The translations under genes were made by a program, and so were the position numbers. This document shows positions 4,195 through 59,543 of a stretch of DNA of 64,000 nucleotides, one piece after another; the first letter of the stretch is position 1; each line of letters opens with the position of its first letter. The stretch comes from Phaeosaccion multiseriatum (taxonomy: Eukaryota > Protista > Ochrophyta, other classes). The notes beneath the pieces were generated by a model. It was given only the letters and a program-made list of their open reading frames with translations. It ran no database searches and was not told the origin of the DNA. The stretch is taken from contig OZ218954.1 in the NCBI GenBank assembly GCA_965112735.1, forward strand, positions 1,550,001-1,614,000. The letters are read 5' to 3'.

Positions 4195-5905
4195 GTCGCT
4201 ATCCAACATGAAGCCACTTGTGCTCGTGGTGGTGCTAAGTGCCTTACTCCTCACGCTACTAGTAGTGGTCTTCGGGGAATGGGGCCTATCGTTGCAGACG
4301 GGCTGCGGAGCAGGAGGTATAGAAGGCATGTCAATGGGAGAAGCCGCCGGGAGCGCAACCTCGGGCAAGCTCTTTACGATGGCCAAAGTCCGGCGTTGGG
4401 CAGGGAGGCGGCTGTTCAGCGACGATGACCACTCGTCCTTAGCCGCATCCAGGCCCAGCCCTCCCCCGACTCTGCCCGGGGCCCGCTTGTGTGAAAACTG
4501 GGCGGTGATCACGAGCATCAACCCCCCCACCACCCTGATGAGGCAGCTCGTACAAGAGCCAGACTGGTGCCTCGTGGTAGTGGCGGATCGAAAGAGCCCC
4601 TCACTCGACGAGTGGGACCTGGAGCAGAGCTCTGACACCGTCTACCTGACGCCTGATATGCAAGAGCAGCTGCCCTATACCCTCAAGGACAAGACGCCAT
4701 GGAACCACTTTGGCCGCAAGAACCTGGGCTACCTCTTTGCCATTCATCATGGCGCCAAGGTGAGAGCGAGTCTGTCGATTGTCTTTCGTGTCCTTTTTGT
4801 GTGCCGCTCACTTACTTGTTTAAGAACTCCCCATGATTCTCCGCGTCATCCCCTCTCTCTCCATCTCGTTTCACATGTAACTTTCAATTCTGTCGACCTC
4901 CCCAAAGGGACAATTCATGAGCGACGATTCACTTCACTCCATTTTCCCATTCGTCTGCGATCGGACCTGTCTCTTCCCCCCATCCTGCTCACTCTGGCTC
5001 AGGTCATTTATGATACGGACGATGACAACGACTTGCAACCAAAAGGCCAGCGAGTTGCCGAGCTCCCTGTAGCACAAAGCAGCCTGATTCTGAGCGCTCG
5101 CTCTCCTTCCATACGGTCCGGCGTTTTCAACCCCTACCCATTCTTCGGGGCCCCCCTCGCGTGGCCGAGGGGCTTCCCCCTGGATCTCATCAAGGCGGAG
5201 GTGGCGTCCATGGTTCATGACGGAAACGCTGTTGCCTCCTCCGCTGCCGTGGGGGTGGTGCAGAGCTTGGCCGACCACGACCCCGATGTGGACGGTATGT
5301 ACCGGCTCTCTCCCCTACCGCTCCCCTTCTACTTCTCCAAAGGCAAGGATTCGCTCGCGGATGAAGTTCTCGCGCTACCTCGGGGCGTCATGGCGCCATT
5401 CAACGCACAGGCCACCACTTTCTTCCCGGCGTGCTTTTGGGGGCTACTTCTGCCGGTGACGGTACACGGGAGAGTGGCAGATATCTGGCGGAGCTACTTT
5501 ACGCAGCGACTCATGCAGGACATTGGACAGCACCTGGCCTTTGGGGGCAGCAGAGTCGTTCAAAACAGAAACGCGCACTCATACCTTGCAGACTTCCAAT
5601 CTGAGAACCCGCTGTACATGCGGAGTGGGGCTCTGGTGGACCACCTGCAGGAATGGGAGGGACCTCCTACCGCCGAGGGAGGCATGCCCATGCGCATGGA
5701 GGCATTAGTCATTGACATGTACGAGCACGACATTCTGCAGGAGGGCGACGTGATCAGCATGCAGGCTTGGATCACAGATCTGTACGCCCTTGGCTACAGC
5801 TTCCCTCCGACGACATAGAAGACAGGTGTCGGCGGCTAGTCCAATCAAGGCCGTGCTATCCTCAGACGAAAGAAAGGTGCGACTGAGGTGCTCGGCTTCG
5901 CTTCT
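4195..5905 (+). repeat. Segmental duplication block A (matches ~57920-59630)
   Basis: Near-identical sequence from ~12 bp upstream of the STELLO ATG to the (CCT)n tract. Confidence 0.9.
4208..5818 (+). CDS. STELLO-like (DUF288/GT75-related) glycosyltransferase, copy 1; intron 4760-5002
   Basis: N-terminal TM (MKPLVLVVVLSALLL). Motifs WAVITSINPPT, VVADRKSP, PWNHFGRKNLGYLFAI, IYDTDDDN, WPRGFPL, PFNAQAT, VHGRVADIWRSY. GTGAGA...CAG intron at the same position in copy 2. Confidence 0.9.
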   Translation: MKPLVLVVVLSALLLTLLVVVFGEWGLSLQTGCGAGGIEGMSMGEAAGSATSGKLFTMAKVRRWAGRRLFSDDDHSSLAASRPSPPPTLPGARLCENWAVITSINPPTTLMRQLVQEPDWCLVVVADRKSPSLDEWDLEQSSDTVYLTPDMQEQLPYTLKDKTPWNHFGRKNLGYLFAIHHGAKVRASLSIVFRVLFVCRSLTCLRTPHDSPRHPLSLHLVSHVTFNSVDLPKGTIHERRFTSLHFPIRLRSDLSLPPILLTLAQVIYDTDDDNDLQPKGQRVAELPVAQSSLILSARSPSIRSGVFNPYPFFGAPLAWPRGFPLDLIKAEVASMVHDGNAVASSAAVGVVQSLADHDPDVDGMYRLSPLPLPFYFSKGKDSLADEVLALPRGVMAPFNAQATTFFPACFWGLLLPVTVHGRVADIWRSYFTQRLMQDIGQHLAFGGSRVVQNRNAHSYLADFQSENPLYMRSGALVDHLQEWEGPPTAEGGMPMRMEALVIDMYEHDILQEGDVISMQAWITDLYALGYSFPPTT

Positions 5906-6199
5906 ACCCACCACCACCTCCTCCTCCTCGTCGTCGTCGTCGTCGTCGTCGCTCCTCTCAATCACCCTCCCTTCTGTTACTCCACAGAACCACTGCCCGA
6001 CTTACTACAGGGTGTCTATGGTTGGTCTCCTCGGAGACGCGCTAAGAGACTGGGTACGTCTCAGGGACAGCTTTCTTGCTGGTGATGAAGTGGTTCAAGG
6101 CGGACTGTTTCGCCGCCCTACCATAGGCAGCACCGGGACTTCAGCTTGAAGTGCTCTCTATCCAAACCAGCACCATTGTGATCCCTTGAGCAGGATAAG

Positions 6200-6700
6200 T
6201 TGCAGGACCTACTGGAGCGAAGCGGCGAGCTAGACATTGACGGCCGTGATACCTTCGGACAAACACCACTCTTTTTGGCCTGCTATAAGGTACAAGCTCT
6301 TTCCACGTCCCCCTCTTCTACCTGTCTCTCCTCCTCGTTCTTCCCTCTGCCCCCATCTGGATGTCAACTCGCTCGTTGGTGCTTCTTCTGCTGCTGCTGT
6401 GCTTCTGCTCGTGTCGTGCTCTTGCTCCAGAGCTCCAAGGATATGGTGTCCCTGCTAGTGAAGCACGGCGCCTCCCTGTCGCTCAAGGACTGCAACGGGA
6501 ACTCGCTGCTGCATGTGAGTTGTGGAGTCGGTGCTGTGGAGATGGCATCCCTGCTGCTCGATCTCTCTCTGCAGCGTGCGGGTGTCGGGGAGGGGAAAGA
6601 GCCCGTCGACTTGAGGGTCTTGCTGAGGGAAAGAAACAAGGAGGGAAAGACTGCGCTGGACGTCGCAAAGGTGGGTGAGAACGTCGAGAAGACTCGCTAA
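6200..6700 (+). pseudogene. Ankyrin-repeat gene fragment, copy 1
   Basis: DIDGRDTFGQTPLFLACYK, intron, then SSKDMVSLLVKHGASLSLKDCNGNSLLHVSC...NKEGKTALDVA. Downstream exon-like segments contain stops. Confidence 0.65.
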
Positions 6701-7029
6701 GTCAAGCTGATGCTGCTGTGCTGCTGGTGCTACTGCGGTGGTGTCGGACGCTTTCAGAGGGGTGCAACTCGAGTTCGTGATTTCTTGCTGATGACTAGGG
6801 GGCAGTCGCGCGTAGAGGAACCGTGTGTGAAAGGGTGACAGGTGCTGAAGGAGATAGGCGAGGACAAGGAACGAGTTGCAAGGGCTCTCCGGTTGAGGTG
6901 ACTTTCCCCAGCGGCTTGGGCTATGCTACGAGGGGGCGCCTCCGTAAGAATGCTCCGAAGGTGCTACTTTTGACGAGTCCCTGTGGCTACCTACCTTGCT
7001 CCTTTTTCTGCTCCTTGCTCCTCGTTCTT

Positions 7030-7290
7030 GCTCCTCCTCCCCCTCCTCCTCCCCCTCCTCCTGCTCCTCCTCCTCCTGCTCCTCCTCCTCTTCTTCTTCT
7101 TCCTGCTCCTCCTCCTCCTCCTCCTCCTCCTCCTCCTCCTCCTCCTCCTCCTCTTCCTCCTCCTCCTCCTCCTCCTCCTCCTCCTCCTCCTCCTCCTCCT
7201 CTTCTTCTTCTTGCTCCTCCTCCTCCTCGTCCTGCTCGTCCTTGCTCCTCCTCCTCTTCCTCCTCCTCTCCCTTCTCCTCCTCGCTCCTC
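7030..7290. repeat. (CCT)n microsatellite
   Basis: Directly visible. Confidence 0.95.
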
Positions 7291-7999
7291 TCAATCACCC
7301 TCCGTTCTCTTACTCCACAGACCACTGCCCGGCTCACAACAGGGCTTCTATGGTTAGTCTCATCGGAGACGCGTTAAGAGACTGGGTACGTCTCAGGGAC
7401 AGCTTTCTTGCTGGTGATGAAGCGGTTCAAGGCGGACCCTTTCGCCGCCTTACTATACCACTGTTCCCGTCGACGCTCAATCCCCCCTTACGCAAGGCTC
7501 TGTCCACGATGCTTGGCACCATACCCGAGGCACTCATGGCCTAAGAGAAGCGCTCACTCCTGCCTTCTCTCCGCGCTCATCGTTCCCTGCCCTGCCCAGC
7601 CCCTTGCCGAGGAAGGCAATGCTGCGGCGTCACTCTCGCCGGCGGCTGCTTAATCTCTCGGCGTCAAGAATGCCTCGCTGCTGACGAATCTAACGGCCCA
7701 GATATCGGCCTTGAGCTCTGGACTCGGAACTTTGAAGGCGGACCTCGATGCTTCTCGACGGGAGACGCAGCCGCAACAGCCCCCAGAGCAGCAGCAGCAG
7801 CAGGTGGAGGGCGCACAGGTGGGCCAAGTCTTAGCACAGCAGATGAGAGCCTGCTGGCCCTCATGCGGTGCAAAATGGTCATGGCTGACGAGCAGAAGGT
7901 GCGTGGGAGAGGAGTCCAATGAACAGCTCAATCTGTTTTAGCAGAGTGCCAAATGGGATACAGCAACACCAGACTTCAGTAAAAAAAAAGGAAAGAAGT

Positions 8000-9710: not shown

Positions 9711-12595
9711 ATGTTAGCGAGACGGTCGCTGCAGGACAGCAGAGGAGGCTTTCGGCGTTGGGTGGGCACGGACATCAAAGGCACTCTTCTCTTTGTTCTT
9801 GTTGCCCTCTACCTGGGGTCTTTGCTGTGGTGTTGGAGCGTATTTCCTCACAACCATGGTGGCCGAGGTATGGCTGGTGACGGAAATGCTGCTGCCGCGG
9901 TGCCTGGTGTCTCATACCCGGACTCTGTAGTCTTGAAGCTGGAGGAGGTGAACAATCAGGGGCAGCGGACACACAAGGAGACAGAACGGCAGGCGCTACT
10001 AGACCATAGAGACCAGGTTGAGAAACCGCAGAACAGGAAGCAGCAACAGCAACAGCAGCCACAGCAGCGGGACCATGACGGAGCTGTTCCAGTTGAAGAT
10101 AGGCTGGTGGAGAAGCTGCCAGATAAGGGGCTGAAGCAGCCACTCGAGCAGACTGACAAGGAGTTGCTAGAGAAGCTGAAGGAGGCGAAACAGCAGCCGC
10201 TCAAGGGCACCAGACGTGATCGTGATAGAGCCGCTGTGATTGCTGTCCCATATGCCTATAAGGAGCTGGAGCAACCACACAACCAGCGCTGGCTAAACCC
10301 TGACGCCCCGACTACGGGCTTTCATGTAGTCTCCAAGCCCGTGCACGAGCAGCTGTGCTACGATGAGCAAGGCGGGACAAGCAAGGGGGCGAGCGATTCA
10401 TCGGACGCGGCATCCATTCGTCATTGTATGCCCAACTTTGTCATCGTTGGTACAGGGCATGCTGGTTCTACCTCGCTGTACAACACCTTGGTGCAGCACC
10501 CTCAGGTTCTTCCAGCAGCAATGAAAGAGGTGCAGTGGTTTGCGGGCCGGAAGGAGGGATGGCTCAACGTTGAAAAGTACGCGGAGAAGTTCCCGGACAC
10601 GCAGGACGAGTACCATGTGACGGGCGAGGCTTCCACACACTACTTTGCAGACCCGGCAGTGCCCTCTCAGATGCGATGCCTGGTGCCAAACGCCCGCATT
10701 GTCATCCTGCTTCGAGAGCCCGGTGCTCACTGCTGGAGCGCAGCGGGCTACAAGCTCAAGAAGATTGGATGGGATGAGCAAGAGAAGATGTGGGATACGT
10801 GCGGCGGCAAGCTGTGGAAGGATGGAGAGAAGAATCGTCATCAGGACAATTACCACGTGAGTAGCTACAGCAGAGGGCGGGGTCGAGATCTTTCATCCAA
10901 GTACCAGCTCATTTCTTCCGCCACCTCTGCCTGTTCCGTGTCCACTACCGCCATTGTACTCCTCTTCTCACGCTCGTTCCTTCTTCGTCGCCTCCCTCAC
11001 CTCCCCTCCCTGCTCCCTCGCCCTCGCCTCCCTCACCTCCCTGCTCCCTCCCCTCCCTCCCCTCGCTCCCTCCCCTCCCCCCCCTCCTTCGCTCTTTCCC
11101 GTCCTTTGCCTCCCTCGCGTCCACCCCCCTTGACTTGCATTTGCTTGTGCAGCCTTGTCATCAGCCAGACCACTACATTGAAAGCTTGAAGCGGTGGTAC
11201 GCTCACTTTGCTCCGGAGCAGATCCTTGTGCTGTTCTCGGAGGAGCTTCGCCTGGACATGCCTGCTGCCCTTCGCAAGGTGGAAGACCATTTGAGCCTGG
11301 CACCCTTCGACTTTGGTCCAATTTTGGACGCAGAGCAGGCGCACAAGGCGCACGCGGGTGCCAGCGGAGGTATGCCACGCTCCTTCCGGACACTTTTTGA
11401 CCACTGCTTCAAAGCTACTGCTGTGGCCGTGAGGGACATGTTTCCCCAAAGGAATTTGACGGCTTTGGGTGATTGGGCAGATGTATTGAGTGGCAGTGCT
11501 AGCTACAGTGCATTACCTCAAGATGGGCAGGAGGAGGAGAAGTGGGTAGCTATCGTTCATTACCTCTGGTCCATGCCTATGGGAGACTTGGCGAGCCTCG
11601 CAACGCTGGAGACGAAGCTGGACAACAAGATTTGCTACTGCAAGCAGAAGGGCAAACGTTGCTCTGTGCACCTGGTGACTGCCAACTACTTTGGCGAGGA
11701 GGGTCTTGGCAAGATGCTTCCCGTACCGTGGCAGGAAGAGCCTCTGCTCATGACAGAAGAGCTCCGCAGTAGGTCCCCTCACTACGGCAAGCTCTTGGCG
11801 GTGGGGCGGGTGCTGATGGATGTGGGAGAGAGCACGAGCTGGGCGTACTACCACGATGTGTTTGACACGATGATTGTGGATTATTCCATCTCGATCAACG
11901 AGCTGCTCCCAGAGAGCATGGGCGACGAGTACGGCCTCGCCGTTTCGGACGCGCCGATCATGGGACCTTGTGCGGGTGCATACGCCATCAAGAACAATGC
12001 CGTGGGGCGCGAGATCTTGAGGGAGTGGTGGGACATGGCAAAGCACAAGCCCCCGCATGCAGACCAAGGGGCGCTTTATAATGTCATTCTGCGACGGACG
12101 AACGGCTCCACCTTCTTGCCAGGGAATGACGATGCGGTCGGCAAGTACGAAGATGAGTGCCTTCAGGATCCTCGGTACCGGCCGATTTGGGGCAAGCAGA
12201 CGGGCTGTTTCAACGAGTATATGCAAAAGCAGGGTCTCGGGTTCGGGCACCGTGCAGCCAAAGGTGTGTACTTCTTCGATGCTCGGGGCCCTGACATGCA
12301 AGCCTTTCCCTATGAGGGATATGGCAATCGCGCAGAGAAGGGCTACACAGACGTCTTTTACAGCCCCTTCAACTACAGCGATCGATGGGCGTCTGTGTTC
12401 CAGCCTGGCGACTTCCTCCTGCATGGCGGCAACTTGAAGGCATCAGCGCCCAGTGCCATTGCCAAACAAGACCGCAAAGAGCGCTGTGAAAAGGGACCCG
12501 CTGCCGCCTTTTTCGAGGATTGCACACACAAGGAGGAGTTTGGCGCATGCAGAACGTTCTTGACTTGGAAAGAGGGAGGCAGGGCCGAGCCGTGA
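9711..12595 (+). CDS. Type II membrane sulfotransferase (HS3ST-like) fused to a GT34 (GMA12/MNN10)-like glycosyltransferase; intron 10857-11152
   Basis: TM LLFVLVALYLGSLLWCW. 5'-PSB motif PNFVIVGTGHAGSTSLY, then KEVQWF, GEASTHYF, ARIVILLREP. A phase-0 GTGAGT...TGCAG intron joins to YIESLKRWYAHFAPEQILVLFSEEL. GT34-like motifs follow: YGKLLAV, HDVFDTMIVD, AGAYAIKN, ADQGAL, PGDFLLH. Confidence 0.85.
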
Positions 12596-13313: not shown

Positions 13314-14420
13314 CTACTGTACAACCACGGCATCACACACCAGGTGGAACAAGACCGACAGTTGGAGCTGTACAAGTTTTCTGTCGAAGTGCCTGCCGTC
13401 TCTTTTTGAAGTGAAGGTGCACATGTTGTCCGTGATCCGGAAGCCGTCCACTACACGCACCCGGGGATAGTGCTCGGTCAAGAATGCCAGAGCCCGTGTT
13501 TATTTATTATTTATCTTTTGCCGGTCAAACACGGACGTGTAACGCTCAATCGAATCTGCATACTTGTAGTCCGGCGATTTGGGCGGTAGAAACGACGAGT
13601 TTGCGCTTGTCACCGCTGCCAAGGTTTTCTTGTATGCACCGTCCCAACCCCCCGTGCATATGCTATTTGTCAGCATCCAAACGATGATGAACACATAAGT
13701 CGGTCGAGCGAGAATCGCCAAGCATCAGGTGATGAAGAGCGCAGTTAATGTACACAATGCGGGGCTGAGTGTCCACCACCGCTTGCTTCAACGTGAAATG
13801 TGCTTGTTTGGCAAGAAATAGCCGACGCCTGGTGGGTTGAAGCTAAACACGCGTACCGCACTCTTCCCGAGTTTTCTTTTGCTCTCCTTCTCCTGCCTTT
13901 CGAATTCCTCCACCTGCTTGCGTATGAGGGAGTCTCCAATCGCCAATATGGCGTTCGGGACAAAGTCTCGCGCTGCAAAGGATGGCAGTGCCGAATACGT
14001 GCAGATGCACGCCTGAGCAAAGTCTGCGCACACTGTTTCGTTTTGAGGTACGCGCTGCTCCTCGTAAAATAGTAGTCCACGAAACTGGTCGATGTAAGCA
14101 TTGATGTGACGCATATCCCCGCAAGTAGCGCACACGTTGCTGTACAGAAGAAGTGGGGCGACCGGATCAGGGAAGCACCGCACAACGTCATAGCTTCGAT
14201 TGAGGTACTCGAAGGCAGTGTCGGAGCCTTTCTCTCGATTCGCATCCACCCGTTCGTATTTCAGGCGGGGCACATGCGCGGCTGTATCGAGGAGAGAGGC
14301 GAGGAGAGAGCCCGGGGGGAGGGGGGTGGCGAAGGCAAATAACATTGCAGTGATAGAAGGTACGAAGTAAATGTTAGTAAAAAGAATCTGGAATAGCTTT
14401 CGCCTCACTTCCACGCTCAC
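13314..14420 (-). pseudogene. SGNH/PC-esterase (TBL/Cas1p-like) polysaccharide O-acyltransferase or esterase, frameshifted
   Basis: Motifs across three frames, in order: ILAIGDSLIR (GDS), IVYINCALHH, IIVWMLTN, RVVDGFRIT, DGRHF (DxxH). One in-frame TAA at 13500-13502. Confidence 0.7.
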
Positions 14421-14566: not shown

Positions 14567-15284
14567 ATGCTTTTCGGGTACAAATTATCAACCCGCGACA
14601 GCACAGTTCAATGGACTACATATAGAGAGCAGGTAGCGGTACTACATTAGCAAAGGCTACAAAAAAAGGGGGGGAAAGAACAAATAACAAATAATGGGAA
14701 ATTTACTTCTTCCCCCCCCGTGCGTGTTGTAATCCGCCGATTTGAGGCAGCACAGATGGCACCGTACTCCCTCTCGTCTCTCACACACACCCCCACACAC
14801 ACTTTCAGTTTCAGTTTCTCAGGTGATTCCTCTTAAGTCAATATATGTCCTCCCATGCATATGGGGGAGGGGGATAGGGGAGCGCCCGACAGAACCCTTT
14901 CTTACTTTCGCAAGGCCATACGGTCGGCGTCCGCTTCGCTCCTACACTCGTCCTACCTCCCCCTCTCCACCAACACAGCGAGCAACGAGTACCTCATCAT
15001 CCCTCCCTCTCCCGTGCGCTCTCTCACGCCATTGGCCGTTCTGTCGGCTGAGGCGGCAAGATCAGCAGCAAGAGGGTGATGAAAAGGGGGGGGAGAGGGA
15101 TGGGAAGGGGACAGTAAAGCAGCGGAGGGGGTGGCGGAGCGGACCTCGCATGACGGAGTTCTTGTCACCAACACCAGGAGGGGAGATACCTTCAACGTCT
15201 TTGCATGTAAGTGATGTAAGAGGAGTCCAACCCACATATATCCCACATTCCAACCCGATCCCAACCCCTTGGAGTGAATGACTG

Positions 15285-26276: not shown

Positions 26277-26335
<59 letters not shown>

Positions 26336-41521: not shown

Positions 41522-41557
<36 letters not shown>

Positions 41558-41647
41558 GACTTGGCGGAGTGGGGCATCTATGTGTCGGCCCGGAAACCCG
41601 ACGCGTGGAGATGGCACGAGCTGCAGCACGGGCAGCTCCTCTGCTGA
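33328..41647 (+). CDS. Multi-exon protein: N-terminal hydrophobic segment + tubulin-tyrosine-ligase-like ATP-grasp domain + JmjC (cupin-like) 2OG-Fe oxygenase domain
   Basis: TTL motifs RVNRLP..LGRKD, FLPRTW, VLKAPDKDLGKGVFLV, LQRYVSHPLL, RKFSFGVYV, HLTN, DFLLDDSLKVWLLEV. JmjC motifs ENRPLLL, WSASALKEEF, PTHIDCFENVLLQLHGVKTVTLYPP, LYPGSALYIPLMWLHSVES. Introns 37110-37298, 37885-38192, 38283-38365/38380 and 38851-39051 keep the two halves in one frame. Start inferred. Confidence 0.75.
34330..34560. repeat. (CCT)n/(TAC)n compound microsatellite, intronic
   Basis: Directly visible. Confidence 0.95.
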
Positions 41648-49233: not shown

Positions 49234-49625
49234 GCATCCCCACAAGAACAAAATCTGCTACCGAGAATCAGAAGAGTAGTTGTAAGGGCGTCATGCTCGA
49301 AGAAAGTACCCCAGTGCCGATCCCGATCCGATCCAAATCCCGATGCTACACGAACGAGAGGTGATCTATCTAAAAAAAGAGGTGATCACAGGTGAGAGAG
49401 GGGGCGAGAGGCGATGCCAGCGACCCTCTGGTGCCATCCTCCCTATTTTATTTTTTTTTAAATTAAATTTTTCGCCAACAATTGTTCTGCTACTTAATGC
49501 TTAATGCCGATAGAGCCAGGCGTGATCAGTAGAAGCGTCAGCGTCAGCCGACCTGCAATCCCCGCTACCGCCGGCGGCCAGTAGCACGCTACCGAAAAAA
49601 AATGCGAAAACCTCCCCTTTTTTAA

Positions 49626-49866
49626 CACTCGATTTGCGTACTCAGTTACTCAGTAAAAAGAATCGCCGGGGGTGGGGCGGCAAGGGGGAGTGATCTTGCA
49701 GAAATGCTGACAAGTAGGGAGGGGAAAAAGCAATGAAAGCCGAAAGGCTGTGGATCGATACGCATCTCAAAGAGCTACACGAAGAGCTAAGCGCTTCTCC
49801 CACAGCGTTCATTTTGCTACAAGCGCCCTAAATGTTTTTTTCGGCGATTCTTATGCAAATCGAGTG
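49626..49866. mobile_element. piggyBac-type MITE (TTAA target duplication)
   Basis: TTAA|CACTCGATTTGCGTA...AAGAATCGCCG at the left and CGGCGATTCTTATGCAAATCGAGTG|TTAA at the right. Confidence 0.8.
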
Positions 49867-50293
49867 TTAAAAGGCGAACACTTACACAGACGGTCCGAGA
49901 TAGCGCCGCCGGTCCTCAAGAGGGTCTAGCTGTATATGGAGGAGTGTTGTGGCGCGCCCTGTGCGCGCTCTGCCTACAGAGTACATCCATGCACGTACGT
50001 CCATCGCATGCGTACATCCATGACGTAGCTCCGCCTGGGCAGGCTCTCTCTTTCGCACCGTCACCAGAGACACGATGGACATACGCCGGAGAAGCGCCAC
50101 CAGCCACCACCGACCGCACTCCTCCTCAAGAGTTGGGCGAGCCCCGACCTGCCACACGCCAAAGCCGACGCACGTGACTCTCTCCTCTCCCGCTTGGTCT
50201 CGTCCCTCGCGCTGAGCAGAGAGGGGGCTTTCAGTCCAACGGCGCCGGTAGAGAGCGAGGCATCGCTACATTGACATTGATGTGTCTGGCGAA

Positions 50294-51658
50294 CTATCCA
50301 ACATTAAAGTACTTCTTGTCGAATCCGGGCTCCTCGAACAGAGAGGCGTACTCCACGAGCAGCCTGTAGGAGTAGCAAGCAGCGTCTTCTTCCCGCAGGC
50401 GCCTCAAGGCGAGGTCTCTGCTGCGTTGGCACACGTTCCGCGCCTTGCCTTCGTTCAGCACTGCCCACCTCACCACCTGCTCCAGGTCAGACAGCGAGTA
50501 CTGCACGGGTAGGTAGTGCACCCAGGGCAGGACCCGGTCCGAATACCATTGCTGGTATCGGGACACCTTAAACACGACCGAGGAGGAGCCCAGTAGAGCA
50601 GAAAAACGCTGAGAAAAACCGTTCCCGTCGAGGTCCAGCAAGTACTTGTGCTCGAAGAGCCATCTGTAGTTTCGATACCCCTTGAACGAGTACAGAGACT
50701 TGACTCGAGCGCACTCACCCGGAGGATCCGGGTGGCACTGCACAAGAGAGGAGAAGCCAATGTCCACACCCACATCCAAGCTCTCTGCCAAGCCGCCTCC
50801 GAGGTCCAGCTGAGTCTCGTTGCCCCACTTCCTCACTGCTCTGAACCGCAGCCACTCCCGATGGGCGTCTTTATCGTGTGACCCTCCCAGAAAGGGCCCT
50901 GTGGTGGAGCCCCTCCACACTACGCGCGACGCCTTTCTCTCCCACTGAGTGTCCACGGCTGCCACTCGTGTCGCCTCAGACAAATTGCCCAGAAAGTACG
51001 GCAGGCGGATCTCCGTGGGTGGCTTGCCCTTCTCAATGGACCACCCAAACACGGGGACTTCGTGAGCCCACTTTGCATCCAAGATCGGTTTATCCGCCCT
51101 GGAAAAGAGGAACTCCAATGGCTGGTCCGGCGAGGTGAGGGCAGGTCCAACTTCCTCTAAAATTGGACCCCAGAAGGCCACCAGCTTTTTGCGTAGACCT
51201 GCCGGGAAGCCGTCCGCAAAGTCCAGCGCTCCATTTCCCCTTGTGCTGGCCAAGAAGAATGGACTGCCCAGCTTAGATGCCGAGAACACGCCTCTCTTCA
51301 GCGGCGGTCCTCAACGGAATCTGGCCAGATCCGTCTCGATGTTGGCATAGTCATACAGTTCGCAGTTTCTGCTCTCGGCAAAGCTGAGCCAGGAGAAGAG
51401 CAGATGCGGGGCGTCTCTTCCATAGCGACGGGTGTAGTCGGAACTAAACCGCTCCCACGAAGTGAACGAATCCCCACTTCTTTCTTCCTTCTTCTGATGA
51501 TGTACTAACAACGAATCGGCCTCGCCACCACTTCTTTCTTCCTTCTTCTTCTCCTCCTGTAAGTAATATATACTATATATAAAGTGAATGGCCACCAGCA
51601 ATAAAATCGAGAGGAGGGTGACAAGCCGCCAGGGCTTACTTGTCAGTGCTGGCCCCAT
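50294..51658 (-). pseudogene. Glycosyltransferase family 90 (CAP10/POGLUT-like), copy A, with a premature stop
   Basis: Motifs WERKASRVVWRGSTTG, HKYLLDLDGNGFSQRF, LPWVHYLPV. In-frame TGA at 51311-51313 where copy B has TCA (Ser). Confidence 0.85.
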
Positions 51659-51942
51659 CAGTCGGTTCGCTCCCTCCTCCTTCGAAAAGAGCAGGCCCAA
51701 GGCTTTGCTTGAGGAGTCCGACAGCGCAAACGAATGGAAGCAAGGACGAGGCCGGGAAGGGGGCAAGAGGCAGGAATCACCTTAGGAACTGAAAGTGAAA
51801 GTGTGTGGTGGATTCTGCGGTGTGATGTGATCGTGTGTGGTGGGGAAGCAAGACGAAGAATAAAATAATAAAGAAATGACGGAGCGAGGAAGAGGGGGAA
51901 AGATTTGGAGCAGTTGGTTCTTCCCTTTCCCCGAATTTATCT

Positions 51943-51973
<31 letters not shown>

Positions 51974-51978
51974 CTGTA

Positions 51979-52335
51979 CTCTGATTTCGCGGTTGAGTGG
52001 CCCTTTTGAACGCCCCGTGAATTTTTTTTGACGGCAAATGACGATTACTTTGACGATGTTTGACGACTTTTGATCCCTTTTTTACCCACTTTAAAGCCCT
52101 GTTTGACGCACTTTGACGCCCTTTGACACCCTTTTATCTTAATTCGCCTTCATTTCGTCTAAAAAAAATCACGTAAAAAAAAATCACGGAAAAGGGCGTC
52201 AAAGGGCGTCAAAGAGCGTCAAAAGGCGTCAAAGGGCGTCAAATAGGGGGCTAAAGCGTCGTCAAACGTCGTCAAACGTCGTCAAAAAAATCGTCATTTG
52301 GCGTCATTGTGTGCCACTCAACCGCGAAATCACAG
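51979..52335. mobile_element. TA-flanked MITE (Tc1/mariner-type) with internal TTTGACG/CGTCAAA repeats
   Basis: TA|CTCTGATTTCGCGGTTGAGTGGC ... GCCACTCAACCGCGAAATCACAG|TA (22/23 inverted match). Confidence 0.85.
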
Positions 52336-53148
52336 TAATAAGATCCAGAAGGCCTGAGAAAGCTGACGGTCCTCAAGAGGGTCTAGCTATATATGGAGGA
52401 GTGTTGTGGCGCGCCCTGGGCGCGCTCTGCCTACAGAGTACATCATGCACGTACGTCCATCGCATGCGTACATCCATGATGTAGCTCCGCCTGGGCAGGC
52501 TCTGTCTTTCGCACCGTCACCAGAGACACGATGGACACCGCCAGAGAAGCGCCACCAGCCACCACCGACCTGCCACACCGCCGATGCACGTAAATAATAA
52601 CTCTCTCCTCTCCCGCTTGTTCTCCCTCGCGCTAAGCAGAGAGGGGGCTTTCAGTCCAACGACGCCGGTAGAGAGCGAGGTATCGCTACATTGACATTGA
52701 TGTGTGTGGCGATGGGGAGAGCAACTCCTCCCACACAGGGAACCACGCACAAAGCCGGAACGACGAGACGACAGGTCGAGGCGGGAAATCGGTCCGTCGT
52801 CTTCAGCGTGTTCTTGCGGCGCGACAGGCATGTTCATCTCCTCCTCCTCCTCCTCCTCCTGCTGCTGCTGCTGCTGCTGCTGCTCCTGCTGCTCCTGCTG
52901 CTGCTGCCGAGGCGCTAGTCTCATTTTCCCAGGCGCGCTGCGCTTGTCAGGCAGAGCACGTAGAGTGGCGACAGGGCTCCTTCTCCCGCTTCGGAGTCCT
53001 TTGGCGCGGGTCGACCTCAGCCGTCACGTCAACAAAGGACAGCATGCAGCCCTCGACCCCCGCAATGGGCTCACACCATCTGCGCAGCTCTATCTGAATG
53101 CCGCCGCGCCGCCGGCGAAGCCGCGGAGCCGCCATACAGACTTCCAAA

Positions 53149-54432
53149 CTATCCGACATTGAAGTACTTCTTGTCGAATCCGGGCTCCTCGAACAGAGAG
53201 GCGTACTCCACGAGCAGCCTGTAGGAGTAGCAGGCAGCGTCTTCTTCCCGCAGGCGCCTCAAGGCGAGGTCTCTACTGCATTGGCCCACGTTCCGCGCCT
53301 TGCCTTCGTTCAGCACTGCCCACCTCACCACCTGCTCCAGGTCAGACAGCGAGTACTGCACGGGTAGGTAGTGCACCCAGGGCAGGATCCGGTCCGAATA
53401 CCATTGCTGGTATCGGGAAACCTTAAACACGACGGAGGAGGAGCCCAGTAGAGCAGAAAAACGCTGAGAAAAACCGTTCCCGTCGAGGTCCAGCAAGTAC
53501 TTGTTCTTGAAGAGCCATCTGTAGTCTCGATACTTCTTGAACGAGTACAGCGACTTGATTCGATCGCATTCACCCGGAGGATGCGGGTGGCACTGCACAA
53601 GAGAGGAGAAGCCAATGTCCACACCCACATCCAAGCTCTCTGCCAAGCCGCCTCCGAGGTCCAGCTGAGTCTCGTTGCCCCACTTCCTCACTGCTCTGAA
53701 CCGCAGCCACTCCCGATGGGCGTCTTTATCGTGTCCCCCTCCCAGAAAGGGCCCTGTGGTGGAGCCCCTCCACACTACGCGCGACGCCTTTCTCTCCCAT
53801 CGAGTGTCCAGGGCCGCCACTCGTGTCGCCTCAGACAAATCGCTCGGAAGGTACGGCAGGCGGATCTCCGTGGGTGGCTTGCCCTTCTCAATGGACCACC
53901 CAAACACGGGGACTTCGTGAGCCCGCTTTGCCTCCAAGCTCGGTTTATCCGCCCTGGAAAAGAGGAACTCCAATGGCTGGTCCGGCGAGGTGAGGGCAGG
54001 TCCAACTTCCTCTAAAATTGGACCCCAGAAGGCCACCAGTTTTTCGCGTAGATTTGCCGGGAAGCCGTCCGCAAAGTCCAGCGCTCCATTTCCCCTTGTG
54101 CTGGCCAAGAAAAATGGATCGCCCAGCTTGGACGCCGAGCACACGCCTCTCTTCAACGGCGGTCCTGAACGGAATCTGGCCAGATCCGTCTCGATGTTGG
54201 CATAGTCATAGAGTTCGCAGTTTCTGCTCTCGGCAAAGCTGAGCCAGGAGAAGAGCAGATGCGGGGCGTCTCTTCCATAGCGACGGGTGTAGTCGGAACT
54301 AAACAACTCCCATGAAGTGAACGAATCCCCCCTTCTTCCTTCCTTCTTCTGACGATGTAAGTGAATGGCCAACAGTAAAATCGAGACGAAGAGCAGCAGC
54401 CAGCGCTTACTTGCCAGTGCTGCTATCATCAT
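53149..54432 (-). CDS. Glycosyltransferase family 90 (CAP10/POGLUT-like), copy B, intact and intronless
   Basis: 427-aa ORF with TM WLLLFVSILLLAI and the same GT90 motifs as copy A. Confidence 0.9.
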   Translation of the reverse strand: MMIAALASKRWLLLFVSILLLAIHLHRQKKEGRRGDSFTSWELFSSDYTRRYGRDAPHLLFSWLSFAESRNCELYDYANIETDLARFRSGPPLKRGVCSASKLGDPFFLASTRGNGALDFADGFPANLREKLVAFWGPILEEVGPALTSPDQPLEFLFSRADKPSLEAKRAHEVPVFGWSIEKGKPPTEIRLPYLPSDLSEATRVAALDTRWERKASRVVWRGSTTGPFLGGGHDKDAHREWLRFRAVRKWGNETQLDLGGGLAESLDVGVDIGFSSLVQCHPHPPGECDRIKSLYSFKKYRDYRWLFKNKYLLDLDGNGFSQRFSALLGSSSVVFKVSRYQQWYSDRILPWVHYLPVQYSLSDLEQVVRWAVLNEGKARNVGQCSRDLALRRLREEDAACYSYRLLVEYASLFEEPGFDKKYFNVG

Positions 54433-54608: not shown

Positions 54609-54644
<36 letters not shown>

Positions 54645-54746: not shown

Positions 54747-57700
54747 TCAGAGATTTTTCACGACGCGGTGTGAGTGTAAGCTGCAGGGTTCGTGGAGGCG
54801 TAGAGACCGCGGAGATGCATCATCATCATTCTCTGCGGCGGTAGCTTCAAAGGTGGCGGAAGATGGCGAGCGCTGAGGTGACGGCTGGCAGGTGGTGCGA
54901 GTCACAGAGGAGAAAACTGCGTCGCGCACCGCTCCTGGGGACTTTAGTGCATAGTCTCGCTGCCGATGCCCCGGTTCCTCCTGCTGCCCCTGCCTCTGTC
55001 CCTGCTCCTGCTGATGGCCTCTGACAACAATGCCCCTAGCCCGAAGCTCCTTCTGAAGGGCACTGCAGTTGGACGGATTCCACCAGCAGTTGGTACAGCG
55101 CTCAATGACGCTCCAGTTGTCAGCGCTCCTGTGTCTGGTGTGCTTCTTTCTGTTGGCTCTAATGATGGCCCGCACCTCCGTCTTGAGCTCTGGCGTCAGC
55201 ACGTGCTCACTCAGGTAGGCATGCGTGACGTTGGTGCCTTCCAAGAGGCGCGCAAAGCTCCACCACTCACCCAGCGCAATGTTGTAATTCTCCCCCGCAT
55301 TGAGGCACCAGATGTGGCCTCTTGCCAGCACTTTGGCAAGCTTCTCAAGCTGCCGCGTTCGAAAACCCTCGTTAAAGTTCTGGATATAGAGCGCCTCGCA
55401 GTTGGTGTTCACCGCCAAGGCCTCCAGAACCTCATCGATCACAGTGCTGTTGGTATCCGGCCCCAGCCAGTGGTGCAGCTTCAACACCACCACGTCTGGG
55501 TGGTTGTTGCGAATCATGCAAAGCATTTGTTGCACCACTGAAGAGTCCAGCATGGTGGTGCCCGCTGCCCGCTCGCTTCTCCTGACCCACTTCTGCCACG
55601 GACTGCATCCACCACCACTGTGTATCCCTCTGCTGTTGTCTTCCAGGTGCCTGTCCTCTGTCATCAAAGAGCTCTCGTTCGCAATCGACGCTGCTGTCCC
55701 TGCTGCTACTACTGCTGCCGCTTGCTGCCGCTCCTCCGCCTGCCTCATCGCCAGAATCGCCTTGGCCGTCTGCTTCGCTTTCTCCTCCAGCGCTGACCAT
55801 CGACTCATTTCACTCTTGTCAGCCTCATCATCACTCACCTCCTCCACAAACACGAACTGCCTTCTCCGCCTCGGCTTCTTCCCCCGTTTCCAGACAACCC
55901 GTCCCTCTGGAGTGGCAGCTGCTGCCGCTGCGGCAATAGCTGCTGCAGCTACCCCGGGGGCTCCGAAGCTCCGTCTCCTATCCTCTTCATCCCCCTCCTC
56001 TTCTTTCTCGTCCTCCCCCTCCTCCATCGTTCCGGCACTCTCTCCCCGCGCCTGTCGAGGCGGAGTATGGTATGGAGGGGGGAAGAGGCCCGCCATCCCC
56101 CCCGCCACGTCTTGGTGAGAGAAGGCACCGCCAGCAGTGGCCACAGCAGCAGACAGGTGCAGCTTGTCCAAGACCTCGCGCGAAGGGCGCGGTGGCTCCT
56201 GCGCAGGAATGCGCAAGGGACCGACAAGGCGCCGCTTCGAGCCCCCACCGCTACTCTTGCTCCCGCAGCTCCAGCCCTGCGCTCTGCTCCGAGCCACAGT
56301 TTGGCCCGACTGATGTGGAGGACACGCGGTTTCTGCTGTTACTGCCCCACCTCTCTCTTCCAGCCCCTGCTGTGTCCCTTCTACTCCTGACCGGCCAGTA
56401 ACAGTACTCACTGGGCTGCACAGTATACTGCCAAGTTCGGTGCCATCGTTGACCAAAAAAAGCTTCTCGTCAACACCACCCCCGCGCTCTGCGGTCAGAA
56501 GGGGTCCTTCTTTGTCGTGCCCCGAACCTCTTGGCTGTGTCCTCTCCGTGTCGGGGGTTCTGATTGTAGCAAGCGCTGGGGAAACCTTGCTGCCGATGCT
56601 ACTGCTGCTGCTCGTTGCTTTACCGGTACCGCCAATAGCATTGCCAGTTTCTTGTTCCTGCTGTTGCTGCTGCTGCTGCTGCTGCCCCTTGGCTTCGATT
56701 TGCGGCTCGTGTTTCTGCGCAAGCTTCAGAGATCTGTGCTCTCCCTCTTTACCAACCCTCTTCTCCTTTCTCTTGATATCTTCTTTTGCAGCTGCCTCTT
56801 TCCTCCTTTCTAGGAGCATCTTGGCTTCTTTCCTCGCCCTAGCCTCGACTTCTCCCCAATCTACGGAGCGCCTATTTCGTTCCACTTTTCCTTCTTCACC
56901 CACACCCCCCTCACTAGCCTTACTCTCCGCAGGCCCTAGACTACCATCCCACTCTCCCTCCTCCTCTTCCTCCTCCTCCTCCTTCTCCTTTTTCTCTACA
57001 CGTCCTCCCTCAGCCTCCTTCACGCCGGGAGTGCGATGGTAGACTGACTTCTCCTCACTCATGGCGTCCTCTCCCTGTAATTCCCCCTCAAGAGTGTGCC
57101 GCGGTCTCTTCCCTGGCCTTCCGCCATGGCCAAGAGGGGCAAGCGTTCCGCCCATGCTGGGTCTCTTGAGGCCTTGTCGACTTCTCTTCCGTGCATTCTT
57201 TCCACCCCCGTGTGTGCTTTTGCATGCCGCTGCTGTCAGACTGTTGTCTCTGTCCTCCTTCTCCTGGCTCCGTGCCGCCTTCGTAAGCCCCCCCTTTTTG
57301 TGCTGCTGCCCGTGCTCCATAGCGCCCCCCCCCCCGCCACTCGCCATGTTCCTTCCCCCCCTTTCTCCTCCCGCACCAGCAACGGAAGTGGACGATGATG
57401 GAGAAAGTAGCAAGGCCATCCTTCTTCTCTGTTGAAGCAGAAAGAGAGCTTCCTGTCGGGCCTGGGCTTCCACGTCCTCCCAAATAGAGGTGGGCGCCGC
57501 ATCCTCAACGTCGTCCTCATCTTCCTCCCCATCGCCATCTCCATTCTTCCGCTGGTTGATACTGGGGCTGCAAGTGCCCACCCCCTTCTCCTTCTGCCCC
57601 TGCTGCTGCTGCTGCATCCACCGGCGTGGAGACATGCTCACAGGTACAGGCCACGAAAAGGTTTTCCTCCTCTCTTCCAACTTTGGTGGTCCTCTAGCTG

Positions 57701-57933
57701 AACGGAGGTTCCTCGCTTTCGCCGCCCCTTTGAGAAGGGGGTGTTCTCCGCCCCCCACGATAGAATGTTTGGGATCCGCCCCTCTTATACGCCTCTTGCT
57801 GTCGCTCCCTCTTGAGAAGCCCGCTTCCCTGAGGGAGGGAAGGAATCAAGATTACGTAAGGATACCTAATAAGTCAGCAAAATGTGTAACGGGCTTTTCC
57901 TCACCTTTTTTGTATCTGTTCGCTATTCAACAT
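54747..57933 (-). CDS. Large, mostly disordered protein with a C-terminal RNI/LRR-like globular domain; probable intron 57830-57904
   Basis: 1003-aa open frame continues upstream to a pyrimidine-rich CAG acceptor at 57830. A GTGAGG donor at 57904 gives an in-frame first exon MLNSEQIQKR. The ordered domain runs IRNNHPDVVVLKL...LEALAVNTNCEALYIQN...IWCLNAGEN...WWNP. Confidence 0.65.
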
Positions 57934-59543
57934 GAAGCCGCTTGTGCTCGTGGTCGTGCTAAGTGCCATAGTCCTCACGCTACTAGTAGTGGTCTTTGGG
58001 GAATGGGGCCTATCGTTGCAGACGGGCTGCGGAGCAGGAAGTATAGAAGGCATGTCATCGGGAGCTGCCGCCGGGAGCGCAACCTCGGGCAAGCTCTTTA
58101 CTATGGCCAAAGTCCGGCGTTGGGCAGGGAGGCGGCTGTTCAGCGACGATGATTTATCATCCTTAACCGTATCCAGGCCCAACCCTCCCCCGACTCTGCC
58201 CGGGGTCCGCTTGTGTGAAAACTGGGCGGTGATCACGAGCATCAACCCCCCCACCACCCTTATGAGGCAGCTTGTACAAGAGCCAGAGTGGTGCCTCGTG
58301 GTAGTGGCGGATCGAAAGAGCCCCTCACTCGACGAGTGGGACCTGGAGCAGAGCTCTGACACCGTCTACCTGACGCCTGATATGCAAGAGCAGCTGCCCT
58401 ATACCCTCAAGGACAAGACGCCATGGAACCACTTTGGCCGCAAGAACCTGGGCTACCTCTTTGCCATTCATCATGGCGCCAAGGTGAGAGCGAGTCTGTC
58501 CATTGTCTTAGTCCTTCTTGTGTGCCGCTCACTTACTTGTCACGCACTCCCCATGATTTCCCACATCGTCCCCTCTCTCTCCATGTCTCGTTTCACCCTA
58601 CCACCTTACATCATCTGTCGACCTATCCAAAGCGATGATTCATGAGCGACCATTCGCTTCACTCCATCTCCGTATTCGCCTACGATTGGGCCTGTCTCTT
58701 TCCCCCATCCTGCTCACTTTGGCTCAGGTCATTTATGACACGGACGATGACAACGACTTGCAACCAAAAGGCCAGCGAGTTGCCGAGCTCCCTGTAGCAC
58801 AAAGCAGCCTGATTCTTAGCGCTCGCTCTCCTTCCATACGGTCCGGCGTTTTCAACCCCTACCCATTCTTCGGGGCCCCCCTCGCGTGGCCGAGGGGCTT
58901 CCCCCTGGATCTCATCAAGGCGGAGGTGGCGTCCATGGTTCATGACGGAAACGCTGTTGCCTCCTCCGCGGCCGTGGGGGTGGTGCAGAGCTTGGCCGAC
59001 CACGACCCCGATGTGGACGGTATGTACCGGCTCTCTCCCCTACCGCTCCCCTTCTACTTCTCCAAAGGCAAGGATTCGCTCGCGGATGAAGTTCTCGCGC
59101 TACCTCGGGGCGTCATGGCGCCATTCAACGCACAGGCCACCACTTTCTTCCCCGCGTGCTTTTGGGGGCTACTTCTGCCGGTGACGGTACACGGGAGAGT
59201 GGCAGATATCTGGCGGAGCTACTTTACGCAGCGACTTATGCAGGACATTGGACAGCACCTGGCCTTTGGGGGCAGCAGAGTCGTTCAAAACAGAAACGCG
59301 CACTCATACCTTGCAGACTTCCAATCTGAAAACCCGCTGTACATGCGGAGTGGGGCTCTGGTGGACCACCTGCAGGAATGGGAGGGACCTCCTACCGCCG
59401 AGGGAGACATGCCCATGCGCATGGAGGCATTAGTCATTGACATGTACGAGCACAACATTCTGCAGGAGGGCGACGTGATCAGCATGCAGGCTTGGATCAC
59501 AGATCTGCACGCCCTTGGCTACAGCTTCCCTCCGACGACTTAG
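57932..59543 (+). CDS. STELLO-like glycosyltransferase, copy 2; intron 58484-58727
   Basis: Near-identical to copy 1; splicing the 244-bp intron restores the full ORF. Confidence 0.9.

Follow-up and report, generated by a model that had tools for sequence, protein, structure and literature searches.

Non-homologous enzymes of one glycan pathway adjoin each other in fungal and plant biosynthetic clusters (for example that for galactosaminogalactan in Aspergillus) and in bacterial capsule/EPS loci, systems in which co-regulation has been shown and the product is known. In plants, the STELLO, GT61, GT34, MUCI70/TOD1 and TBL families are not known to be clustered. Among algae, chromosome 19 of Ostreococcus tauri is a small outlier chromosome, rich in glycosyltransferases and tied to prasinovirus resistance; the whole chromosome is low in GC, carries transposons and prokaryote-like genes and shows karyotype rearrangements, and resistant lines over-express it as one block (PMC5082852). 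Brown algae possess a microsyntenic cluster of 3-4 genes (FK-GFPP, sulfotransferase and hydrolase) for fucan synthesis, which is conserved across brown-algal orders (PMC11468063).

Here we describe ~55 kb of nuclear DNA, lying in a window of 64 kb (the whole stretch that was analysed), which is a real, dense neighbourhood of 9-10 Golgi-type glycan-enzyme genes from about seven unrelated families (Table 1). Like Ostreococcus chromosome 19, the locus brings together many glycosyltransferase and other sugar-modifying genes, repeats, a miniature LTR element (TRIM) and some structural duplication; unlike that chromosome, it has uniform GC, its genes lie among housekeeping genes and a second sample preserves gene order. 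With the brown-algal fucan cluster it shares a stramenopile lineage and a carbohydrate sulfotransferase placed beside other genes (there, of sulfated-glycan synthesis), but the 9-10 genes here belong to other families, and no glycan gene lies within 10 kb of the STELLO homologues checked in Scytosiphon and Nannochloropsis. Unlike the fungal, plant and bacterial clusters, the locus is of mixed orientation and falls into two interrupted blocks. The gene products resemble plant STELLO, GT61, GT34 (XXT/GMGT), MUCI70/TOD1 and TBL proteins and animal POGLUT (GT90) and HS3ST in family or fold and in type-II topology, although identities are low, several matches fall under curated cut-offs and the likeness is no guide to substrates.

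Table 1. Coordinates of genes, duplications and repeat elements in the 64-kb window.
Feature	Position	Strand	Evidence
Segmental duplication, copy A	4196-7607		self-BLAST
STELLO-like A	4208-4759 + 5003-5818	+	Pfam PF03385, 66.9 bits
Sulfotransferase + GT34-like fusion, one gene, 862 codons	9711-10856 + 11153-12595	+	
Candidate SGNH/PC-esterase-like gene, at least 4 exons	13317-14345	-	motifs by eye
GT61-like glycosyltransferase, single exon, membrane anchor	19538-21139	+	Pfam PF04577
WGGxND gene 1, single exon, membrane anchor	21863-22993	-	profile search + GT-A fold model
WGGxND gene 2 (DUF7796), membrane anchor	23165-23517 + 23653-24271	+	PF25072
Intervening unrelated multi-exon genes, many microsatellites	24900-47000		Pfam + tandem-repeat search
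AhpC/TSA (peroxiredoxin)	26194-26754	-	Pfam
Ankyrin gene	32113-32559	-	Pfam
TTL	35.5-37.2 kb		Pfam
Cupin_8/JmjC	41231-41644		Pfam
Derlin	42824-44631	-	Pfam
TOD1/MUCI70 (DUF616)-like, single exon, membrane anchor	48292-49233	-	protein-language-model search
MITE-like element 1, 253 nt, 21-nt terminal inverted repeats	49620-49872		inverted-repeat search
GT90 copy 1	50294-51658	-	Pfam PF05686, 75.5 bits
MITE-like element 2, ~360 nt, 53-nt terminal inverted repeats, TTTGACGCC subterminal repeats	51977-52337		
GT90 copy 2, intact, 427 codons, membrane anchor	53149-54432	-	Pfam PF05686, 76 bits
Segmental duplication, copy B, rearranged, runs off window	57920-64000		self-BLAST + tandem-repeat search
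STELLO-like B	57932-58483 + 58728-59543	+	Pfam PF03385, 71.2 bits
TRIM-like non-coding LTR element, ~1.7 kb	60704-62412		

Gene content and layout

The first-pass annotation had counted ten glycan genes or pseudogenes, of which nine are supported, with uneven strength, while the tenth, its 'SGNH acyltransferase', was called on motifs alone. The glycan genes are genuine, and only one of them is no longer intact. Five exceed Pfam thresholds (both STELLO-like genes, both GT90 copies and the DUF7796 gene), the HS3ST-like sulfotransferase and GT61 have weaker Pfam or PDB matches, and the GT34-like and TOD1/MUCI70-like assignments come from protein-language-model matches only; these last two and the SGNH-like gene are thus family calls without profile-level support. 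The genes lie on mixed strands, one block covering 4.2-24.3 kb and the other 48.3-59.5 kb, and nine of the ten encode an N-terminal membrane anchor. They are also intron-poor beside intron-rich neighbours, although the SGNH-like gene, which needs at least three introns, exceeds the 0-1 annotated for nearly all of them.

The fusion gene encodes, in order, a membrane anchor, a carbohydrate sulfotransferase domain and a GT34-like GT-A domain, with a phase 0 intron (10857-11152, GTGAGT..CAG) splitting the sulfotransferase domain. Its Pfam matches to Sulfotransfer_3 and Sulfotransfer_1 are below cut-off, its first exon matches heparan-sulfate 3-O-sulfotransferase (HS3ST1) at E 1.2e-7, and the GT34 assignment derives solely from the protein-language-model search (0.96). 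The SGNH-like candidate shows GDS, INCALHH and DGRH motifs by eye and coding-like GC1/2/3, and had no match in Pfam, PDB or homologue searches. The GT61-like gene matches its Pfam family at E 3.2e-5 (24.6 bits, under the cut-off of 27), and no PDB relative was found by sequence. For the TOD1/MUCI70-like gene, which has no Pfam match, the language-model search gave a score of 0.94, with 25 of 30 matches in PF04765 clusters.

WGGxND gene 1 likewise has no Pfam match, and a profile search recovered 1096 representatives of its family; 7 of 50 aligned members match DUF7796 weakly. Its AF2 model (pLDDT 83) has a GT-A fold (Foldseek E 1e-5 and VIA Z 11-12 to GT-A transferases), and its large family, barely covered by Pfam, is distant kin of DUF7796. 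WGGxND gene 2 matches DUF7796 itself (34.3 bits, cut-off 27), has GT..AG splice sites and aligns with gene 1 at E 6e-5. The two genes stand head to head, 171 nt apart, and this tight spacing of two DUF7796-type genes counts for a neighbourhood. Family-level functional links are seen in the sulfotransferase-GT34-like fusion here and, among homologues, in fusions of WGGxND-family members to GT2, Fringe or CHGN domains and of STELLO to DUF7796 (4 of 120 listed homologues, two of the four checked). The DUF7796 partners in the latter are related to the DUF7796 gene of the window through the Pfam profile only, with no pairwise match.

Local duplication and gene loss

Both STELLO-like genes are well above the PF03385 cut-off (27.8 bits) and are full length against ~50%-identical homologues, with end-to-end coverage in tblastn. 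Copy A has a membrane anchor at its N-terminus, a DxDDDN motif and an intron at 4760-5002 (GTGAG..CAG). Indels between the two copies are confined to introns, and splice sites are canonical; copy B is intact, as its ORF break falls inside the intron. Exon 2 has a Ka of 0.0048 and a Ks of 0.037 (Ka/Ks 0.13), and purifying selection keeps both copies. These genes are carried by a segmental duplication that measures 3.4 kb or more, whose copy A begins 12 nt upstream of the STELLO-like A ATG, also holds an ankyrin-repeat ORF (6182-6697, Ank Pfam matches) and is 93-94% identical to 57920-59681, 62762-63663 and 63623-64000 (self-BLAST). Copy B contains a TCC microsatellite (59635-59986), an inverted copy of A 7461-7973 that is split by the TRIM-like element, and then a direct copy at 62762-64000; the inverted piece explains the long inverted matches in the window. 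The direct repeats of the duplication flank ~50 kb.

The GT90 genes, both far above the PF05686 cut-off of 24 bits, lie in tandem units (52367-54359 versus 49910-51504, 96% identical), and the nearest solved structure to copy 2 is POGLUT2 (E 6.6e-17). Alignment with copy 2 reveals one TGA in the frame of copy 1 (51311-51313), besides a 78-nt insertion (51505-51582) that keeps the frame; copy 1 is otherwise open. The stop is present in the source sample, whereas a second sample of the same organism reads TCA (Ser), from a contig that extends across sequence specific to copy 1. The pair has a Ka/Ks of 0.57, and copy 1 is on its way to loss via a nonsense allele found in one sample only. Ks is ~0.04-0.07 for both duplicate pairs. 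Recent duplication had thus been annotated correctly, but there are two duplicate pairs rather than one, and only one gene rather than two is visibly inactivated, namely GT90 copy 1 by its TGA. The locus has grown by local duplication at the DNA level, through the rearranged STELLO-carrying segment and the tandem GT90 units.

Transposable elements and composition

Recognisable transposon sequence amounts to ~2.3 kb of the 64 kb (two MITEs and one TRIM-like element). Both MITEs are of very high copy number, with contig depths of 60-500 times single copy for the first and up to ~1000 times for the second, which sits between the two GT90 copies and for which one contig joint skips 258 nt. In the TRIM-like element the 224-nt LTRs share 100% identity and have TG..CA ends, the target duplication is the 4-bp CTGC, and a 113-nt satellite makes up the interior. 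Neither terminal repeats nor target duplications enclose a glycan gene or block in the window, and an annotated KDZ transposase has no counterpart in Pfam profile matches to any window ORF; shuffling by DNA transposons, as had been proposed, finds no support in so little transposon sequence.

The glycan genes have host-like composition and canonical introns: their GC is 0.53-0.60 and their GC3 0.61-0.73 (neighbouring genes 0.59-0.71), and there is no GC shift across the window.

Function and origin of the neighbourhood

We consider the locus to be a neighbourhood resident in the nuclear genome, its genes encoding Golgi-type glycan enzymes with type-II membrane anchors, of about seven unrelated families, and forming two blocks on either side of 23 kb of ordinary genes, with a common-glycan function (probability roughly 0.6). 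The enzymes would share one secreted or wall glycan, to which several GT-A and other transferases might add sugars and which the heparan-sulfate-type sulfotransferase fused to the GT34-like domain could sulfate; the adjacency of the genes may reflect shared regulation or co-inheritance, and the small transposons would be bystanders rather than a cause. Upstream k-mers shared among the glycan genes were not found. The parting of the two blocks by unrelated genes counts against a common function, and it is one of the points that would fit a grouping without functional meaning, in which a glycan-rich genome and a duplication-prone stretch bring together genes for unrelated glycans. That 4 of the 10 glycan genes are recent local duplicates fits it too, as do the want of a common promoter motif and of conserved synteny in two relatives. 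Yet with duplicates collapsed 7-8 independent glycan genes of unrelated families are left among ~22, with a binomial P of 1e-6 to 1e-11 at an assumed background of 1-3% (the true density in the genome may be high). Glycan-gene density is thus far above chance if that background applies, and the same families are fused here and in homologues, so that we regard a meaningless grouping as unlikely.

Decidedly doubtful is the reading of the first-pass annotation, a mobile or hypervariable surface-glycan island whose genes DNA transposons capture and shuffle, with a link to virus resistance as in Ostreococcus. Each MITE is indeed separated by 30-40 nt from the beginning of a GT90 duplication unit, and a young TRIM-like element sits inside duplication copy B, but transposon sequence is scarce, nothing brackets the genes and the KDZ call lacks a Pfam match. 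The direct repeats (at least 3.4 kb) on either side of ~50 kb could mediate unequal exchange, and the nonsense allele of GT90 copy 1 differs between samples; against hypervariability, the single 6-kb stretch that was compared has the TOD1-like gene and the two GT90 copies in unchanged order in the second sample, with 0 differences in the TOD1-like gene. The intron-poor genes next to intron-rich neighbours might suggest an island, but there is no GC shift, unlike low-GC Ostreococcus chromosome 19 (PMC5082852). There is no good evidence, in sum, for a fast-changing anti-virus locus moved by jumping genes, and a virus-resistance link or a sulfated, acetylated wall polymer is conjecture.

The intron-poor genes might also have been left behind by an integrated giant virus or by some other horizontal transfer, which we hold to be very improbable. 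Most language-model neighbours of the GT34-like and TOD1-like genes belong to Nucleocytoviricota clusters, although no close viral relative of either gene was found, and giant-virus MAGs encode STELLO-like genes, but at 21-33% identity as against ~50% for eukaryotic homologues. The window ORFs scanned include no viral hallmark gene, composition and codon bias do not differ from those of the host, and at least four glycan genes have spliceosomal introns; a mobile or foreign island is not supported. In favour of a viral source, the word search placed two of the five nearest homologues of WGGxND gene 1 on dense contigs that read as giant-virus-like from gene content alone. One of these two homologues adjoins LicD.

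Gene content and clustering

The locus is a cluster of glycan-synthesis genes in a eukaryote, of a kind that is already known, with a modest dynamic of gene birth and death. Seven to eight unrelated families of glycan enzymes fall within 55 kb of the window (see table), among them a tight triple at 19.5-24.3 kb formed by the GT61-like gene and two DUF7796-type genes. At least three adjacent genes thus encode non-homologous enzymes from a single pathway class, one of the features by which biosynthetic gene clusters are recognized in eukaryotes. Nine of the ten glycan genes carry a hydrophobic N-terminal anchor, as the first-pass annotation had described for nearly all of them. With recent duplicates merged and the SGNH-like gene excluded, seven independent glycan genes stand among ~22 genes, for which the binomial tail runs from 1.5e-9 to 2.5e-6 and remains small when ~1100 windows are allowed for, both under an assumed background of 1-3%. 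An exact-sequence look-up of two window proteins in a public gene index found neither recorded.

Features of the window and their positions
Feature	Position	Strand	Description
STELLO A	4208-5818	+	intron 4760-5002, GTGAG..CAG ends
Sulfotransferase-GT34-like gene	9711-12595	+	exons 9711-10856 and 11153-12595; phase-0 intron, GTGAGT..CAG
SGNH candidate	13317-14345	-	four ORF pieces
GT61-like gene	19538-21139	+	single exon
WGGxND gene 1	21863-22993	-	
WGGxND gene 2	23165-24271	+	two exons; DUF7796
Unrelated multi-exon genes	24.9-47 kb		AhpC/TSA peroxiredoxin, ankyrin protein, TTL domain, Cupin_8/JmjC domain, derlin
AhpC/TSA peroxiredoxin exon	26194-26754	-	Pfam E 2.6e-7; in microsatellite-rich middle block
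TOD1/MUCI70-like gene	48292-49233	-	
MITE-like element	49620-49872		21-nt terminal inverted repeats
GT90 copy 1	50294-51658	-	
MITE-like element	51977-52337		53-nt terminal inverted repeats; TTTGACGCC subterminal repeats
GT90 copy 2	53149-54432	-	
STELLO B	57932-59543	+	intron 58484-58727, GTGAG..CAG ends
TRIM-like non-coding LTR element	60704-62412		224-nt LTRs, 100% identical; TG..CA ends; 4-bp CTGC target duplication
Segmental duplication, copy A	4196-7607		93-94% identity to copy B (self-BLAST)
Segmental duplication, copy B	57920-59681, 62762-63663, 63623-64000		leaves the window
GT90 tandem duplication units	49910-51504, 52367-54359		96% identity

The family assignments draw on Pfam scans of ~90 window ORFs, in which multi-exon genes were queried exon by exon, and they differ in strength from gene to gene. 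Both STELLO genes match PF03385 (A at 67 and B at 71 bits, against a cut-off of 27.8) and keep the DxDDDN and GRVSDIWR motifs that are invariant across 25 aligned homologues. The two GT90 copies match PF05686 at 75.5 and 76 bits (cut-off 24), the aligned portion being the C-terminal third of the profile only, and their nearest solved chains are POGLUT2, POGLUT1 and Rumi. For the GT61-like gene, PF04577 scores 24.6 bits against a cut-off of 27 (E 3.2e-5), and a PDB sequence search gave no match. The sulfotransferase domain, which is preceded by an N-terminal anchor, has Pfam matches under cut-off, and its nearest solved relatives are the heparan-sulfate 3-O- and N-sulfotransferases (E 1e-7). 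It is fused in one gene to a putative glycosyltransferase, the GT34-like part, which comprises the last 347 residues of the product and has neither a Pfam nor a PDB sequence match; a language-model search places this part among GT34 (PF05637), DUF273 and Nucleotid_trans clusters (0.96), and the single-sequence AlphaFold model of the domain is unusable (pLDDT 33). Similarly, the putative TOD1/MUCI70-like gene, previously labelled DUF616, has no Pfam match up to E 10 and is assigned by the language-model search only (0.94, with 191 shared features and 25 of 30 matches in PF04765 clusters).

The 'SGNH acyltransferase' is the weak point among the ten genes. Its GDS, INCALHH and DGRH motifs can be found by eye across the ORF pieces, the first of which has a coding-like GC1/2/3 pattern. 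No exon has a Pfam, PDB or homologue match, and for exon 1 a PDB sequence search and a word-based homologue search both came back empty.

Microsatellites are numerous in the block of unrelated multi-exon genes. We note that the second glycan block also contains a long ORF at 54750-57845 (minus strand; 1032 codons) that has no Pfam match and is not a glycan gene; its N-terminal part is long, charged and of low complexity, and its C-terminal ~200 residues look LRR-like by eye. STELLO-like proteins of 45-50% identity are patchily distributed: they turn up in brown algae, Nannochloropsis, a bolidophyte and further protist transcriptomes, as well as in starfish (Asterias, Acanthaster, Patiria) and in a rotifer.

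To our knowledge, stramenopile algae make sulfated extracellular glycans for which most genes are still unassigned, and the cluster offers a short, testable list of candidates that unites sugar-adding and sulfating steps. Clustered glycan pathways are, as far as we know, uncommon among eukaryotes; if its members proved to be co-expressed, the locus would count towards such clustering being a regular feature of this alga.

Gene duplication and gene loss

Two duplications have shaped the cluster. The segmental duplication that yielded the STELLO pair also contains an ankyrin-repeat ORF, and in copy B it additionally carries a long TCC microsatellite and an inverted copy of A 7461-7973. Its boundary (4196 in A, 57920 in B) lies 12 nt 5' of the STELLO ATG, so that the upstream, promoter-bearing DNA of the two copies is unrelated. 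The reading of STELLO B as a pseudogene is rejected because the break in its frame falls within the intron: tblastn with nine homologues recovers each copy as a complete gene of two exons that ends at the homologues' last residues. The intron contains all of the indels and half of all the differences between A and B.

Nei-Gojobori estimates for STELLO exon 2 (Ka 0.0048, Ks 0.037, Ka/Ks 0.13), for exon 1, which encodes the stem (Ka 0.036, Ks 0.071, Ka/Ks 0.50), and for the GT90 pair (Ka 0.036, Ks 0.064, Ka/Ks 0.57) include Ks values that indicate a similar, moderate age for the STELLO and GT90 duplications. Judged by these ratios, both STELLO copies are under constraint in the catalytic domain, and constraint on the GT90 pair is relaxed.

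Relative to copy 2, GT90 copy 1 has an in-frame insertion of 78 nt and a single TGA (51311-51313, minus strand) at a codon that reads TCA in copy 2. We compared public contigs with the window over one 6-kb stretch (48300-54299). Three runs of the probable source sample match the window at the stop base, and a run that comes from a different study and a different sample of this organism has a Ser codon there, on a 713-nt contig; since this contig reaches sequence specific to copy 1, the Ser reading is not due to mis-mapping of the paralogue. Of the two inactivated genes reported in the first-pass annotation, one is borne out, GT90 copy 1, which, from the contigs compared, appears to be a gene loss in progress, and a nonsense allele that differs between samples provides a natural knock-out for comparison. 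The second sample also covers the region between the copies and the flank specific to copy 2, with SNPs and small indels as the only differences (none at all in 1.1 kb of the TOD1-like gene). It therefore has both GT90 copies in the same order, and the duplication predates the split of the samples. The hypervariability that had been proposed for the locus finds no counterpart within 48.3-54.3 kb, where the second sample has no structural difference.

Transposable elements

Transposons are present, and it was suggested earlier that they had shuffled the glycan genes. Both MITE-like stretches occur at 60 to ~1000 times single-copy depth in the public contigs, and a GT90 duplication unit starts 30-40 nt away from each element. 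The TRIM-like element, 1.7 kb long with an interior of 6.7 copies of a 113-nt satellite, splits the inverted copy of 7461-7973 in duplication copy B. Together the two MITEs and the LTR element make up ~2.3 kb of the window as small stand-alone insertions. We found no terminal repeats bracketing a gene or block anywhere in the window, and no transposase in the Pfam scans. The KDZ transposase proposed for 15282-18700 fares no better, the resemblance consisting of loose motifs seen by eye: 13 ORFs on both strands of 15.3-18.7 kb had no Pfam match, and transposase profiles are absent from 14.7-18.9 kb. As far as the sequence goes, movement of the genes by transposons is not supported, nor does the locus have the make-up of a transposon-captured island of the Pack-MULE, Helitron or giant-transposon type.

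A pair of inverted repeats separated by 52 kb was also considered as the ends of a giant transposon, a candidate that was rejected when they proved to be an inverted piece of the segmental duplication; all long inverted matches in the window trace to that rearranged duplication. Within the proposed KDZ stretch there is a 145-nt tandem repeat (18051-18416), followed by G/T-rich repeats at 18854-19016. In the MITE-like element at 51977-52337, all four runs also show 258 nt (52053-52310) replaced by 18 other letters.

Origin of the cluster and comparison with known loci

The window is eukaryotic nuclear DNA. GC content is uniform (0.53-0.61 in every 2-kb bin), and GC3 of the glycan genes (0.61-0.73) matches that of their neighbours (0.59-0.71). 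STELLO-like genes are encoded in giant-virus MAGs. An endogenous giant-virus element was considered and rejected given this host-like composition, the lack of viral hallmark genes in the ~90 ORFs scanned and a STELLO closer to eukaryotic proteins. The viral STELLO-like genes are 21-33% identical, as against ~50% for the best homologues, which are protist, brown-algal and other eukaryotic proteins. When all glycan proteins of the window were compared by tblastn with 19 viral STELLO loci and two algal loci, only STELLO matched, and viral contigs scanned with the TOD1-like and GT34-like proteins held no close relative of either. These identities, with the want of close viral TOD1-like and GT34-like genes, make a recent viral insertion appear unlikely.

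A more ambitious reading would treat the window and its upstream DNA as a single nuclear 'polysaccharide synthesis locus' of ~85 kb, comparable to the capsule loci of bacteria, with co-regulated genes whose product would be a surface glycan that is sulfated and possibly also acetylated and decorated with phosphodiesters; strains could then differ in copy number and glycan structure, for instance where viruses exert pressure, by way of the flanking direct repeats (at least 3.4 kb) and the duplicate genes. We consider this reading unlikely. Functional coherence of the glycan genes in the window is favoured by the sulfotransferase-GT34-like fusion, by the bidirectional arrangement of the two DUF7796-type genes and by the fusions of STELLO and of WGGxND-family proteins described below. 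Against it stand a k-mer search upstream of the window glycan genes, which found no shared motif, and the surroundings of STELLO homologues in Scytosiphon and Nannochloropsis, where no glycan-gene neighbours were found. Of the cases described, Ostreococcus chromosome 19 comes nearest, with low GC, a transposon load, demonstrated rearrangements and an expression switch (PMC5082852). The low GC and the transposon load are absent from the Phaeosaccion locus, and rearrangements and an expression switch are demonstrated for Ostreococcus only; the deviant, lower GC of the Ostreococcus type is absent from every 2-kb bin and from GC3. A link to virus resistance, part of the reading in the first-pass annotation, gains no support from the present analyses. 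For the stramenopile lineage, brown algae offer the known precedent, a small FK-GFPP / sulfotransferase cluster (PMC11468063).

The WGGxND and DUF7796-like genes

The two WGGxND genes stand head to head with 171 nt between them. Gene 2 matches DUF7796 (PF25072) at 34.3 bits against a cut-off of 27, and gene 1 has no Pfam match. A word search found five homologues of gene 1, and a profile built from these and gene 1 recovered 1096 representative proteins at E <= 1e-3; weak DUF7796 matches occur in seven of 50 aligned family members, and Pfam thus covers the family only marginally. Since gene 1 lacks a DUF7796 match of its own and those of its relatives are weak, we regard it as belonging to a distant sister family and do not count it as a DUF7796 member. 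The AlphaFold model of gene 1 on the family alignment (pLDDT 83) predicts that it has the GT-A fold of nucleotide-sugar transferases: Foldseek matches it to B3GNT2, COLGALT1 and XXYLT1 (E 1e-5), and VIA to mannosylglycerate synthase, hyaluronan synthases and GT6 enzymes (Z 11-12 over 180-230 residues). Many members of the family are multidomain, some being fused to GT2, Fringe or CHGN domains. The candidate list takes in a large WGGxND / DUF7796-like family of putative GT-A fold without known activity.

DUF7796 is also carried by four of the 120 STELLO homologues listed, two of the four being confirmed. When the window DUF7796 gene was compared by BLASTP with the corresponding portions of two such fusions, the similarity was not significant, and any argument from the fusions would hold at the level of the Pfam family only.

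Positions invariant in the WGGxND family include GQ..R, R.D, G..D and E. Of the five homologues of gene 1 that rank nearest in the word search, two are found on dense Tara and Logan contigs without introns (L022, L023, L024) that look giant-virus-like by gene content, with an Rpb1 piece of RNA polymerase, a topoisomerase and SET. On two of these contigs the WGGxND homologue directly adjoins a LicD gene (L022, 10001-12241; L023, 8647-10887).
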